Under the pieces are notes generated by a model. It made no database searches. It saw only the letters and a program-made list of their open reading frames with translations, and was not told the origin of the DNA. The position numbers were made by a program, and so were the translations under genes. From Hyaloraphidium curvatum SAG 235-1 (lineage: Eukaryota; Fungi; Monoblepharomycota), in contig JAIVFI010000003.1 in the NCBI GenBank assembly GCA_025558095.1, positions 1 to 64,000 on the forward strand: DNA of 64,000 bases, given 5' to 3'. Positions 11,407-15,389 of this stretch are shown piece by piece. How positions within the stretch are numbered: the first letter of the stretch is position 1; each line of letters opens with the position of its first letter.

Positions 11407-11807
11407 CGAGCGAGGGTCACCGTGGACTCGGATGACAGCGAGTGCGCTTAGCAGCGATGTGACGATTCCGATTGGACCGGTAGCGTGGTCTCCAGGTGTC
11501 GATCGAGCCCAAGCCCGGCCACCCGCAACAATTCGGACCATTGCACAGCCACGACCCGTCTTTCGCGCTCCTCGGCCTTCCCCTGGGATCCTTCACCGCG
11601 CCAAGCAGGCAGACTGCCGGGGTGCTGTCCTGCGGCGGCGGCTGCAGTTGACTCTTTTCCGAGGGCGCCGGTGTCCCTGGGGTGCGCTCCGTCGATTTGT
11701 CCTTGTGACCCTCCGCGCTTCCTGGTGCGCGCTTTCCCGTCCTTTGGCGCCTTCTGCGGCTGCCGAGTCTAACCCATGATCACTTTGAAGGGGTCTGAAC
11801 GCGCGCC

Positions 11808-13668
11808 ATGGCCGCCGCCGGGCGTCACGGCCCCCGGGCGGGCGACACAGCCCTCGGTCTCCCGCGCCCGCTCGGTGTCCTCGCCCTCGCGTCGGCCGCC
11901 CTCCTCCTAGCCGGCCCTGCCTCGGGACAGCTCGTCAACCTCACGGAGCTCACCGAAGGCCCGCGGCCCTTCATCCGGATGACCTGCCGGAACGCGCAGC
12001 CGCCCTTTTCCTCAGTGTTCCAGAGCATCAGCAACACGACGTGCGGGGGCTATCTCGTCGATCTTTGGGTCGGTATTCGGCACGATTTCGATATCGAGGT
12101 CTGACGACAGCCTCGGCCATTTGCAGAACCAGATCGCCACCCGCACGCCCAACGGCTTCTTTTCCAACTTCACCATTACCCCCATGGGATCGGCCGACGC
12201 CATCGACGCCCTTTCGGTTGACGTGGGGACAAACACCTCGGAAGCAGACATCGCGCTCGGCTTCACGTCGATCAACGCGCAGCGCCTGGCCGAGTTTGAC
12301 TTTAGCATCGCCTATCTCGAAGGTGAGCCCAATACGCGCCCCAGCTCCCGGAGCCTCACTCCGCTCCCTCCCTCCAGCCGACTTTGGCGTCGTCCTCCGC
12401 CCCACCTCGATCGCCGCCCAGCTGAGCACCGGCAGCGGCACCGCGGCCTTCGTGCAGCTCGTCGTCTCGTCCCTCTTCACCCGTTCCCCCTGGGTCATCT
12501 TCTGCTTCTGCGCCCTGCTTATGCTGTTCCTCGCCGTCGCGATCGTGGTGTTCGAAGGCCGGACGGGGGACCCGCGGTACGAGGGGGGGAGCAGGATCGT
12601 CGCCCTGGCCCACGCGCTGTCGGTGTCGAGCGTCACGATCCTCACCCAGGCGCCCCAGGAGGACATCGTGAGCCTGGTCGTGCGGATGCTGGTCGGTGGG
12701 TGCTTCCTTCCCCCTTCTCGCCCTCGACGCCGGGTTGCTGATCAACTTCCGCTCGTCCAGGCCTGCTGGCAATCATATCTTTCTTCCTCATAATCATCAT
12801 CTCGGCCGTCGTCACCTCGTCTCTCACCGTCACCGGCCTCACCCAGGCCGCCCTGACCATCGACCAGCTCTCCGGGTACAGGATCGCCGTCGTCGCGGCG
12901 TCGACCACCGTCCCCCTGCTCCAGCTGAAGGGCATCCAGACGATCGAGGTGGAGGATTTCCCGTCCGCTGCGCGGGACTTCCTGGCCGGGAAGAGGCCGG
13001 ATCTGGACGGCATCACGAGCAACACCCCGACGCTCAGGTTCCTCTACAACCTCTACGCCTCAACCAGCTTTCCCGCCGTGTTTTCTACCACTTTCACGCA
13101 GAACGGTGCACATCCCCACTCTGCTCGCCACGCCCGGCTCGTCTCACCCCGCTCCGCTCCAGGCACCCGCTCCCTGTTCGCCCTCCCTGTCTCCGAGCTC
13201 TTCGAGCACCGCCCCCTGCTCAACATCATGCTCGAGCAGCTCCGCGCCGACGGCACGATACGCGACCTCAACGCACGGTACATCTCGCAGCCCGCCGAGC
13301 GCCCCCCCGGCGCGCTCCCGGACGTGGAGCAAAGCACCTTGACCGCGTGGCTGATCGCCACGGGGTGTGCGTACGCGGCGGTGCTGCTCGCATTCGGGGC
13401 GTGGGAGTGGTGGGAGCGGCGCCAGCAGCGGAAGCTTCAGGGGGCGAACGGAGGGGCGCAAGACGACGGCAAGGGCGAGTCGGGGCACCGGCACGCTTCG
13501 GCGTCGGTGCTGGACGGCGGATATGCGGGGCATCCGGGCGGGGCGGTGCTCGAGTTCGAGGGGATCGCGGTGCGGGTGCCTGCAAACAGGAGGGAGGCGG
13601 TGCGCAGGATCGTGGAGGGGATCGCGGAGATGTCGGGTGCGTGGGTGGATAAGGGGAGTGCGGGATAG
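11808..13668 (+). CDS. ionotropic glutamate receptor-like ligand-gated ion channel (SP-S1-M1-P-M3-S2-M4, no ATD)
   Basis: Introns 12069-12126, 12323-12377, 12696-12760 and 13106-13162 give one open frame. S1: PPF..GYLVDLWNQIA..DIALGFTSINAQRLAEFDFSIAYL. M1: WVIFCFCALLMLFLAVAIVVFE. Pore: HALSVSSVTILTQ. M3: RMLVGLLAIISFFLIIIISAVVTSSLT. S2: TIDQLSGYRIAVVAASTT..LNIMLEQLRADGTIRDLNARY. M4: LTAWLIATGCAYAAVLLAFGAWEWW. Confidence 0.85.
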
Positions 13669-13724
13669 CTGGATCCCGCGTCAAGTGGCGGATTGCGGAA
13701 ACAAAAGAGCCGGTCGCTGGGGGG

Positions 13725-13837
13725 GGCACCCCCGCGGCGGGGGGCTTCCACGCCTTCTTCGGCTTCCGCACGGACGGCTACGGCCGCGCCATCGCGGAGG
13801 GCCGAGTGTGGGGTTGTTTGGAAAGGATTGCGTGCAA
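13725..13837 (-). pseudogene. duplicated 5' fragment (upstream sequence plus about 23 codons) of NOP4
   Basis: ATG at 13792 reads MARP*PSVRKPKKAWKPPAAGVP versus NOP4 MARPKPIERRPEKAWKPPAAGLP. The upstream tgtggggttgtttggaaagg(a/g)ttg(c/t)gtgcaa is shared with 6410-6440. Confidence 0.85.
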
Positions 13838-13971
13838 TTACTGGCTCTCACCCCGCTCCCAGCTGCCAATTGCACATTGATTGAAACATGTGGGGCCAGA
13901 CTTTGTCTCTGCCTGGCAACCCTTTCGGCTCGATCCCCCGGATACACCGCGTCCCCCTCCTCATCAGAGAG

Positions 13972-14548
13972 CTAAGCGGCGCACGTCGCCGGCGGCGTGA
14001 CGTACGTCGCCCAATCAGGTGACGTAGACCAGCTGCTGCACGTGGCGAAGGTGAAACAGGCTTGAAGAGCCGCCCTGTAGTTTACTCCTATGCAGGTACC
14101 CGTGCACTTCGCGATGCACGCGTCGGAGGTGGCCACGCCCATTACAAGACCCCCGCCACCGGCGCTGGAGCAGCTCAATCCACCGGACGAGCAGAAGGTG
14201 AAGGGGACGTCTGCCGCATTGGATATCAGGTGGGTTCCGTGGCGAATGGGTACGGGGCGCACCGTAGCGGCGGTAGAGGGACCTCGCGGAATTGTGGGCG
14301 ATGCAGGCGACACGGTCGGCGGGAGCGCCGGGATAGGCGAACTCGCTGGAAGTCATGTGGAAGACGTGATCAGTCAGCGTGGAGAGTGCGGGGCGGCAGG
14401 GGGGCGCTGCGGCGCACCAGAAGTCGCCCGCGGAGCAGTCGGCGCAGGAGCGGCGGAAGACGGGCGGTGCCACCGGGTTCGCGGCAGCGCCCGCGACGAG
14501 GGCGAGGAGGACCAGCGCGGCCAGGCTGCGGAAGGCAGGTGGGGCCAT
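13972..14548 (-). CDS. small secreted Cys-rich protein, copy 2
   Basis: Introns 14417-14346 and 14262-14211 give MAPPAFRSLAALVLLALVAGAAANPVAPPVFRR-SCADCSAGDFCEFAYPGAPADRVACIAHNSARSLYRR-YDVPFTFCSSGGLSC...ACIAKCTGTCIGVNYRAALQACFTFATCSSW...YVTPPATCAA. Confidence 0.85.
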
Positions 14549-15389
14549 TCGGATCTGCGAACTGGAGTGATGAGGGGCGAGCTTCAAGGGACGAGGGCAA
14601 TGGACCTCGATCCCTACCTTGTCCCTGTGAGATAGGCAAAAGGCGATCGGCCCTCCACCGTCCGGCTCCCGCCCGACCACGGCTCCGCACACCTGTGCCC
14701 GAAACTCGCTCTATAGGTTGCCTAGCCTCGGCGCCGCGCTCGACCTGCGGGAGGCCGGGCGGCCAGGCTCGGACGAGTGGACCCCTGTTGCCGTCAGCCA
14801 CCAGCCGGATCCCTGGTAAAGGTACAGCCGCCCGTTCACGCTCCGCGCCGCCCGAGGGCCCCGGAGCGAAGGCGGAAGGGCGCGATCGCGCGCAGGGGCG
14901 CGATCGGAGGAGAAGGAGGAGGATGGTTAGTTTGCCACGAGTACACAAGTATTCGGAGGCGCCGGTGCCCTTTCGCGGGCTGTGTCACCCATTTATTCCA
15001 CATGCATTTCATTTTACGCAGCTCGCTCGGCTAGACGTCCGGCGAGGAGCGCATGTAAACCATGTGAACGCGGTGGGCGCGTGATTCGCCAATTAGCCGA
15101 CGGGGTCGTGCGTGCGGCCAAGCATAGCATCTGCCTTCTGTTTCCGGCGCTTACCTCCGACCTCGGGCCACAGCGCGCTCCTCCGCGCCGTACGCAGCGC
15201 AGAGCAAAGTGAGCAGGGTGTGTGATGGGACAAGTGCATCGCAGCGTGCCATTAGTGCGCTGCCACAATCCGTGGCCACCGGCAGGGACGCTCGGGAAGC
15301 CGGACGCCTCGGAAGGTTCGAAATCCAACAGGGAATCGCATGACGCTGATTTCCGCCCCCCATCAAGCATACCCGACACGAGGTAACTG

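Follow-up and report, generated by a model that had tools for sequence, protein, structure and literature searches.

Do fungi possess ionotropic glutamate receptors (iGluRs)? The question is raised by a gene at positions 11808–13668 (plus strand) of a window of 64,000 nucleotides, the first part of contig JAIVFI010000003.1 in the genome assembly of Hyaloraphidium curvatum SAG 235-1 (GCA_025558095.1). A preliminary description, made from the DNA sequence without database searches, read the gene as an intact iGluR-like channel of an early-diverging fungus and stated that such receptors are generally regarded as absent from model fungi. A 2023 review agrees with the latter point, describing glutamate-receptor channels as absent only from archaea and fungi (PMC11479355). 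Our literature searches, outside which most subscription-journal papers fell, found no report of a fungal or chytrid iGluR. The H. curvatum gene is intact, spliced and transcribed. Judged by sequence profiles and predicted models, its product is a member of the iGluR superfamily, with the two halves of the ligand domain (S1, S2), the membrane segments (M1, M3, M4) and the pore stretch (P) in the order S1-M1-P-M3-S2-M4 and without an amino-terminal domain (ATD). New here are the taxon, at the level of the kingdom, and the subfamily; in its fold, its architecture and its likely mechanism, the protein follows a well-known family.

Gene structure and transcription

The coding sequence consists of five exons (11808–12068, 12127–12322, 12378–12695, 12761–13105 and 13163–13668) and encodes 541 amino acids. 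One public run (X1, stored as contigs) holds this stretch of the window. Its transcript contig of 2451 nt covers positions 11600–13900 with 0 mismatches to the window (100% identity) and lacks five GT..AG introns (11725–11790, 12069–12126, 12323–12377, 12696–12760 and 13106–13162). Only spliced RNA can give rise to a contig that lacks five canonical introns, which establishes both the transcription of the gene and its splices. The preliminary description had proposed an intact gene with four short introns and a protein of about 540 residues. The transcript removes exactly these four coding introns and one more in the 5' untranslated region (UTR), and it supports all splices with 0 differing letters. 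No long single open reading frame (ORF) is present in the region, and its GC content (~65%) is like that of the surroundings.

The 5' UTR exon (11533–11724) has an approximate start, derived from the offset of the transcript contig (record position 68 = 11600), and the transcript piece ends at 11723/11724. The UTR intron that follows (11725–11790, transcript joint 11723 to 11790) removes an out-of-frame upstream ATG at 11776. Because an in-frame TGA (11796–11798) precedes the ATG at 11808, the latter was assigned as the start codon. Exon 1 ends at 12068, and its junction with exon 2 reads DLW/NQIA. Introns 1 (58 nt), 2 (55 nt) and 3 (65 nt) are all spliced out in the transcript contig, and so is intron 4 (57 nt), which is in frame and contains no stop. 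Retention of intron 4 would add 19 residues to a loop of S2 and leave the protein unbroken; the sole transcript contig is spliced at this site. By its length, this contig should extend ~380 nt beyond 13900 (to ~14284), into a convergent minus-strand ORF at 14015–14692. An overlapping long 3' UTR might explain such an extension, and so might the assembly of two transcripts into one contig.

Contamination, or a contig of non-fungal origin, was rejected as an explanation. The introns are spliceosomal, the local GC content is host-like, the transcript is 100% identical, and a paralogue on contig C4 of the same assembly (P0035) is identical to DFJ74DRAFT_655371, listed by NCBI as a 'hypothetical protein' of H. 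curvatum. The fungal host given in the preliminary description is borne out by the same identity.

Relatives and the subfamily

Searches were run with the exons one by one, and a contiguous piece of 301 residues (12763–13665, including the 19 residues encoded by intron 4) stood for M3-S2-M4. An exhaustive phmmer search with this piece against 1.84 billion cluster representatives returned 17 proteins at E ≤ 0.001 (best E 3e-10). The named relatives were all Euglenozoa, namely the kinetoplastids Apiculatamorpha spiralis and Neobodo designis and the euglenid Rhabdomonas costata. One Neobodo protein is labelled in UniRef as 'Ionotropic glutamate receptor C-terminal domain-containing protein'. The remaining relatives came from metagenomes or Logan assemblies. 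The genes of three of the metagenomic proteins (P0015, P0011 and P0007) belong to long arrays in which uninterrupted eukaryotic genes (SH3, SMC, SET, threonyl-tRNA synthetase) all lie on the same strand. Such arrays are the typical organisation of kinetoplastid genomes, so much of the environmental part of the subfamily is probably euglenozoan. The contig of one metagenomic relative, on which the called genes were many short fragments, was read as that of an intron-bearing eukaryote.

BLAST and MAFFT placed exons 1, 2, 4 and 5 collinear with relatives of 460–580 residues, beginning at the signal peptide and reaching a conserved motif at the C-terminus. A hidden Markov model (HMM) was built from the 17 relatives only; leaving out the window gene avoids circularity. 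Exons 1 to 5 matched this HMM in order, at positions 15–51, 61–111, 130–205, 208–321 and 327–462, with E-values (Z set to 1e6) of 5.6e-5, 3.8e-8, 0.038, 2.7e-26 and 4.9e-7, respectively. The subfamily is marked by C-R-x-G-Q-P-P-F and a second Cys (C-x-G) in S1, A-x-I-T-S-x-L-T in M3, D-G-F/I...T in S2 and a C-terminal W-R-G..Y hairpin with a helix, and the window protein carries these hallmarks. The S1 Cys pair and the cytosolic hairpin-helix are specific to the subfamily. The C-terminal motif of the window protein is degenerate (E-F-E-G-I-A-V), yet the same hairpin-helix is predicted. These data delineate a small, very divergent and undescribed subfamily of short receptors from H. curvatum, Euglenozoa and environmental eukaryotes.

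The cytosolic beta-hairpin and helix (13543–13629 in the window, residues 441–476 of the relative P0005) have the consensus W-R/K-G-x-x-Y ... L-D-x-I, are conserved from Euglenozoa to H. curvatum and are present in both AlphaFold 2 (AF2) models described below. Of the relatives, P0005 is the nearest to exon 1 (55% identity across 40 residues). It originates from a Logan contig (SRR10580902, 1516 nt, 40.7% GC, an AT-rich source) and is the sole relative with an AMPA-like pore helix, S-L-W-F-S-L-G.

Relationship to ionotropic glutamate receptors

Matches to the Pfam family SBP_bac_3 in the relatives run from about residue 30 to about residue 370, across the membrane insert. A class-II (SBP_bac_3-type) ligand domain is thus split into S1 and S2 by a channel insert. 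P0005 passed the Pfam cut-off for Lig_chan (47.5 bits against 30.8), and matches below threshold were obtained for P0004 (24.7 bits), P0006 and P0011. A family profile (A1), which has the window exons among its rows, was compared with the PDB. It matched GlnBP (1e-13, in two stretches flanking the insert), GluN2B (1.4e-12), the ligand-binding core of GluR0 (2pyy, 1.6e-10), AtGLR3.4 (6e-9, S1 to M4) and GluA2 (1e-7), and also GluD1. The alignment to GluA2 covered residues 410–622, through M1, pore and M3. P0005 alone matched AMPA receptors at 1.9e-14, through S1-M1-pore-M3 and S2, and its pore helix aligned on the M2 helix of GluA2.

The AF2 model of P0005 had a mean predicted local distance difference test (pLDDT) score of 76.7, with 88–95 in the membrane core. 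It comprised M1 (151–176), a pore helix (187–204), M3 (214–248) and M4 (388–418), then the C-terminal beta-hairpin and helix. The best Foldseek matches of this model were AMPA receptor chains of ligand-binding and transmembrane domains (LBD-TMD; E 2e-17, ~435 columns). The model of the window piece (pLDDT 69) contained M3, an alpha/beta S2 lobe, M4 (helix 190–228), the hairpin (260–273) and the helix (274–290), and its S2 lobe could be superposed at 1.7–2.7 Å on the second lobe of amino-acid-binding proteins and of GluR0, with E-values that are not significant because the alignment is short (~70 residues). A comparison of ESM-Atlas features, which is independent of alignments, placed the ten best family-bearing matches of the window piece (10/10) in the Lig_chan family or clan, with a top score of 0.91 and 191 shared features. 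Arthropod Lig_chan clusters were among the matches.

Domain order and key residues

Hydropathy analysis of the window protein indicated a signal peptide, followed by peaks of 3.25 for M1, 1.56 for a weaker pore-helix-like stretch, 2.78 for M3 and, in exon 5, 1.89 for M4. The N-x-S/T sequons (4/4) are confined to S1, as would suit an extracellular ligand domain. S1 begins ~20 residues past the signal peptide, and the protein therefore has no ATD. AMPA receptor constructs from which the ATD was deleted begin where residue 39 of P0005 aligns, and the LIVBP-like ATD of animal iGluRs and plant glutamate receptor-like channels (GLRs) was not found before S1. M4, as in eukaryotic-type receptors, is present after S2 and is a helix in both AF2 models. 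Hydropathy, the profile and the model of the relative all agree with the order signal-S1-M1-pore-M3-S2-M4, without ATD and with M4, that the preliminary description had given.

Exon 1 (residues 1–87) encodes the signal peptide (approximately residues 1–40) and the start of S1, with C-R-N-A-Q-P-P-F, the second conserved Cys and Y-L-V-D-L-W, as supported by transcript, alignment, profile and hydropathy. The ligand arm of S1 follows in exon 2 (residues 88–153), where the profile and SBP_bac_3 matches cover D-I-A-L-G-F-T-S-I-N-A-Q-R-L..D-F-S. Exon 3 (residues 153–259; transcript, profile and hydropathy) encodes the end of S1, M1 (~12494–12550), the pore-helix-like stretch with the filter T-Q-A-P-Q-E-D (~12590–12664) and the start of M3, R-M-L-V-G. 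The remainder of M3 and the first half of S2 are encoded by exon 4 (residues 259–374), and the second half of S2, M4 (~13339–13395), a low-complexity linker and the hairpin-helix by exon 5 (residues 374–541 and the stop codon); both are supported by transcript, family profile and model.

Individual residues were mapped via P0005 to GluA2 and via the family profile to GlnBP. The S1 motif retains its Arg, as first noted from the sequence. This residue, Arg140 (codon 12283–12285 in exon 2), aligns with the carboxylate binder of GluA2 (R485) and GlnBP (R75) and is Arg in 10 of the 11 aligned relatives. The S2 helix starts with A-S-T-T, the counterpart of G-S-T in GluA2. At the position of the S2 alpha-amino binder (GluA2 E705, GlnBP D157), the window protein has Asn346 (13021–13023), the Asn in ITSNTPTL that had been proposed for this site; relatives have S, T, N or P there, and E once.

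The pore helix and filter read ...S-V-T-I-L-T-Q-A-P-Q-E-D, with Thr at the Q/R site, Gln at +1 and Glu-Asp at +5/+6. The stretch SVTILTQ singled out in the preliminary description is thus present in exon 3, and neither TVGYG nor another K+ signature occurs in any row of the alignment; the refinement needed is that the Q/R-site position is occupied by Thr and not by the neighbouring Gln. The end of M3 (I-I-S-A-V-V-T-S-S-L-T, 12796–12828 in exon 4) takes the place of S-Y-T-A-N-L-A-A-F-L-T with the same spacing, again as proposed, and its T, S and final T (T18, S19 and T22) are invariant in 17 sequences. With a filter that is not of the K+ type (T-x-V-G-Y-G) and with M4, the protein is not a GluR0-type receptor.

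Strength of the assignment

Several observations weigh against an iGluR assignment. Pfam searches with each exon and with the read-through piece returned no Lig_chan match and only a sub-threshold SBP_bac_3 match on exon 2 (E 0.0097), so that the Pfam comparison suggested in the preliminary description succeeded weakly for SBP_bac_3 and failed for Lig_chan on single exons. A six-frame PF00060 scan of the whole 31.9-Mb assembly matched two other loci and not the window gene, and exons 3 and 4, searched singly against PDB sequences, yielded no glutamate receptor and nothing significant. By itself, the gene therefore lies outside pairwise and Pfam recognition. Exon 3, with M1 and the pore, is weak when taken singly (18.2 bits, or 18 bits in round figures, against the family profile); it falls exactly between exons 2 and 4. 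The ligand triad is incomplete, Arg140 and the S-T being kept and the S2 acid lost to Asn346. The M3 motif SYTANLAAF is degenerate, with only the Ala and the Leu-Thr coinciding, and in the gapless alignment with GluA2 via P0005 the +4 acidic filter residue lies one position off. Foldseek with the partial window model gave no match at E ≤ 0.001 (best E 0.036, S2 lobe only, ~70 residues aligned). The models cover P0005 and the M3-S2-M4 piece of the window protein.

The weak SBP_bac_3 match and the missing Lig_chan match of the window exons would also suit a solute-binding domain (SBD) fused to an unrelated membrane domain, that is, a transporter or sensor comparable to GlnPQ-type SBD-permease fusions and no relative of iGluRs. 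A fusion would put the membrane segments beside the binding domain, whereas here they sit inside it, between S1 and S2, which is the hallmark of iGluRs. Moreover, the family profile aligns with AtGLR3.4 and GluA2 through M1-pore-M3, P0005 exceeds the Lig_chan cut-off and is modelled with the fold of an AMPA receptor LBD-TMD, and the ESM features of the window piece point to Lig_chan only. The topology of the insert rules out a fusion of an SBD with a transporter, and we consider this explanation as a whole extremely improbable and close to refuted. On sequence profiles and predicted structures, the link of the H. curvatum gene to iGluRs is transitive but solid.

Proposed mechanism

The best overall explanation, which we hold to be probable, is that the gene encodes an expressed iGluR-superfamily subunit of 541 residues, from a divergent subfamily, with a ligand-gated cation pore and a carboxylate ligand. 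The subunit would start with a signal peptide and S1, continue through M1, a re-entrant pore helix and M3 to S2, and finish with M4 and a short cytosolic tail that carries the hairpin-helix module at its end. By homology, the receptor may be a tetramer. Arg140 and the Ser/Thr that opens the S2 helix would hold a small ligand with a carboxylate between the two lobes, S1 and S2, and closure of the clamshell would pull M3 and open a cation pore that is not K+-selective. The lack of a K+ signature and the acidic residues below the filter suggest a non-selective cation or Ca2+ path.

Loss of the alpha-amino-binding acid in the window protein and most relatives argues against a classical amino-acid site. 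With Asn at this position, the sequence points away from a classical amino acid as the ligand, and perhaps from standard amino acids altogether. Acid-sensing ionotropic receptors (IRs) of insects show similar losses of this acid. A more far-reaching proposal is that a carboxylate other than an alpha-amino acid (e.g. an organic acid) gates the channel via Arg140 and Asn346, in a deep undescribed lineage of minimal ATD-less, M4-bearing channels with their own hairpin-helix that survives only in Euglenozoa, a few uncultured eukaryotes and one fungal lineage. This proposal is speculative, and we regard it as unlikely. If true, it would provide an independent parallel to IR chemoreception in insects and the first ligand-gated iGluR-type sensor in Fungi.

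The lost acid, together with the degenerate M3 gate motif, the atypical filter and the weakly conserved pore exon, could also indicate a protein of the same fold and family that does not conduct. It might be a receptor or scaffold signalling through the cytosolic hairpin-helix, or an obligate partner subunit in need of a co-receptor. Vertebrate delta receptors largely behave as non-conducting receptors. Conservation of the cytosolic module across the subfamily would fit such a role, and the two other Lig_chan genes of the genome could supply partners, although they are related at the superfamily level only, as far as detectable. On the other hand, the protein retains M1, pore helix, M3 and M4 alike, spaced as in iGluRs and gapless against GluA2, and the invariance of T18, S19 and T22 in the M3 motif of 17 sequences suggests selection on the gate region. 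We judge a non-conducting or obligate partner role to be quite improbable and retain the ligand-gated cation pore as the working explanation.

Other receptor-type genes and origin of the subfamily

The PF00060 genome scan detected two more Lig_chan genes above the cut-off, at C4:608519-611866 (39.5 bits) and C5:905425-908709 (31.2 bits). Both have S-Y-A-A-N-L-T in M3, which is better preserved than in the window gene. The nearest ESM clusters of the C4 gene are algal and diatom receptors, and hhalign of the subfamily against P0035 was not significant (probability 0.5%). Searches with the family alignment and with P0005 recovered the window gene only. A paralogue count, as the preliminary description had suggested, therefore gives a single copy for the window subfamily, besides two further Pfam-positive Lig_chan genes on other contigs. 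By their predicted sequences, H. curvatum has at least three iGluR-type genes of two lineages. SBP_bac_3 matches at C8:820398-821015 and C39:465830-466213 were rejected as paralogues, being uninterrupted soluble binding proteins without a membrane insert. They are of the bacterial periplasmic type in a fungal genome, and one is the C-terminal half of an ORF of 527 residues.

The maximum-likelihood tree (M3 to C-terminus) placed the H. curvatum gene outside the kinetoplastid clade (support 88/86), in a deep polytomy with the euglenid and several environmental sequences. Its branch was long (1.3 changes per site). Ancient retention and an old horizontal transfer from a euglenozoan-like donor are the candidate explanations. 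They differ on the origin of the gene and not on its function. Transfer from a euglenozoan-like protist into the Hyaloraphidium lineage would be in keeping with the exclusively euglenozoan identity of the named relatives, the kinetoplastid-like same-strand gene arrays around three metagenomic ones, the lack of another named fungus among the 17 matches in 1.84 billion representatives and the single copy in H. curvatum. However, the position of the gene in the tree and its branch length do not favour transfer, and the four coding spliceosomal introns, the UTR intron and the GC content of the surroundings argue against a recent event, so any transfer would be old. The absence from other fungi is itself weakly established, as records of own or very near genomes may be missing from the look-ups. 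On balance, we consider transfer possible but somewhat unlikely, as opposed to an ancestral iGluR retained in one fungal lineage.

A 2024 eukaryote-wide phylogeny, in a preprint on placozoan Epsilon receptors, mentions a clade from Amoebozoa and Discoba and, in the sections consulted, no fungal receptors; identity of this clade with the window subfamily is only a lead. With at least three such genes in one fungus, and the window gene transcribed, the textbook distribution of iGluRs would need correcting. The sparse spread over Euglenozoa and one fungus makes a clean test case for ancient retention versus inter-kingdom transfer. The small, ATD-less subfamily would also be well suited to structural studies as a minimal eukaryotic receptor, and would be useful for asking how M4 and cytosolic modules joined a GluR0-like core.

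Comparison with known receptors

The window protein resembles the animal AMPA, kainate, NMDA and delta receptors (GluA2, GluN2B, GluD) in its S1/S2 clamshell, interrupted by M1, pore helix and M3 and followed by M4. It also shares with them the S1 Arg at GluA2 R485, the Ser/Thr at the start of the S2 helix and the spacing between the pore helix and the end of M3. In contrast to these receptors, it has no ATD, a gate reduced to A..LT, Thr at the Q/R site, Asn in place of E705 and a short tail with the subfamily hairpin-helix, and a direct pairwise search finds no match between them. The C4 and C5 genes belong to the same genome and superfamily and exceed the Pfam cut-off, but differ in the M3 motif and, as shown above for the C4 gene, in their lack of detectable profile similarity to the subfamily and in their algal and diatom ESM neighbours.

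Bacterial GluR0 shares the absence of an ATD and a ligand core related to amino-acid-binding proteins; the profile matched its core (2pyy), and the S2 lobe of the window model superposed on 1ii5. GluR0 has a K+-channel filter and no M4, whereas the window protein has M4 and no TVGYG-type filter. The preliminary description had concluded from these features that the architecture stands between those of bacterial and animal receptors. This was overstated, since insect IRs also have M4 and no ATD. ATD-less, M4-bearing subunits are the rule among these IRs, and their Arg/Thr/acid ligand triad is variably lost, in correlation with non-amino-acid ligands. The window protein differs from insect IRs in taxon, shows no specific sequence relationship to them and has the subfamily-specific Cys pair and C-terminal module. 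Plant GLRs have an ATD and keep S-Y-T-A, unlike the window protein. Yet among solved structures AtGLR3.4 could be aligned with the profile over the greatest length, S1 to M4 (profile 92–436 against chain 560–902, E 6e-9), and the end of M3 in plant GLRs (...L-T-S-I-L-T-V) resembles that of the subfamily (...T-S-x-L-T-V).

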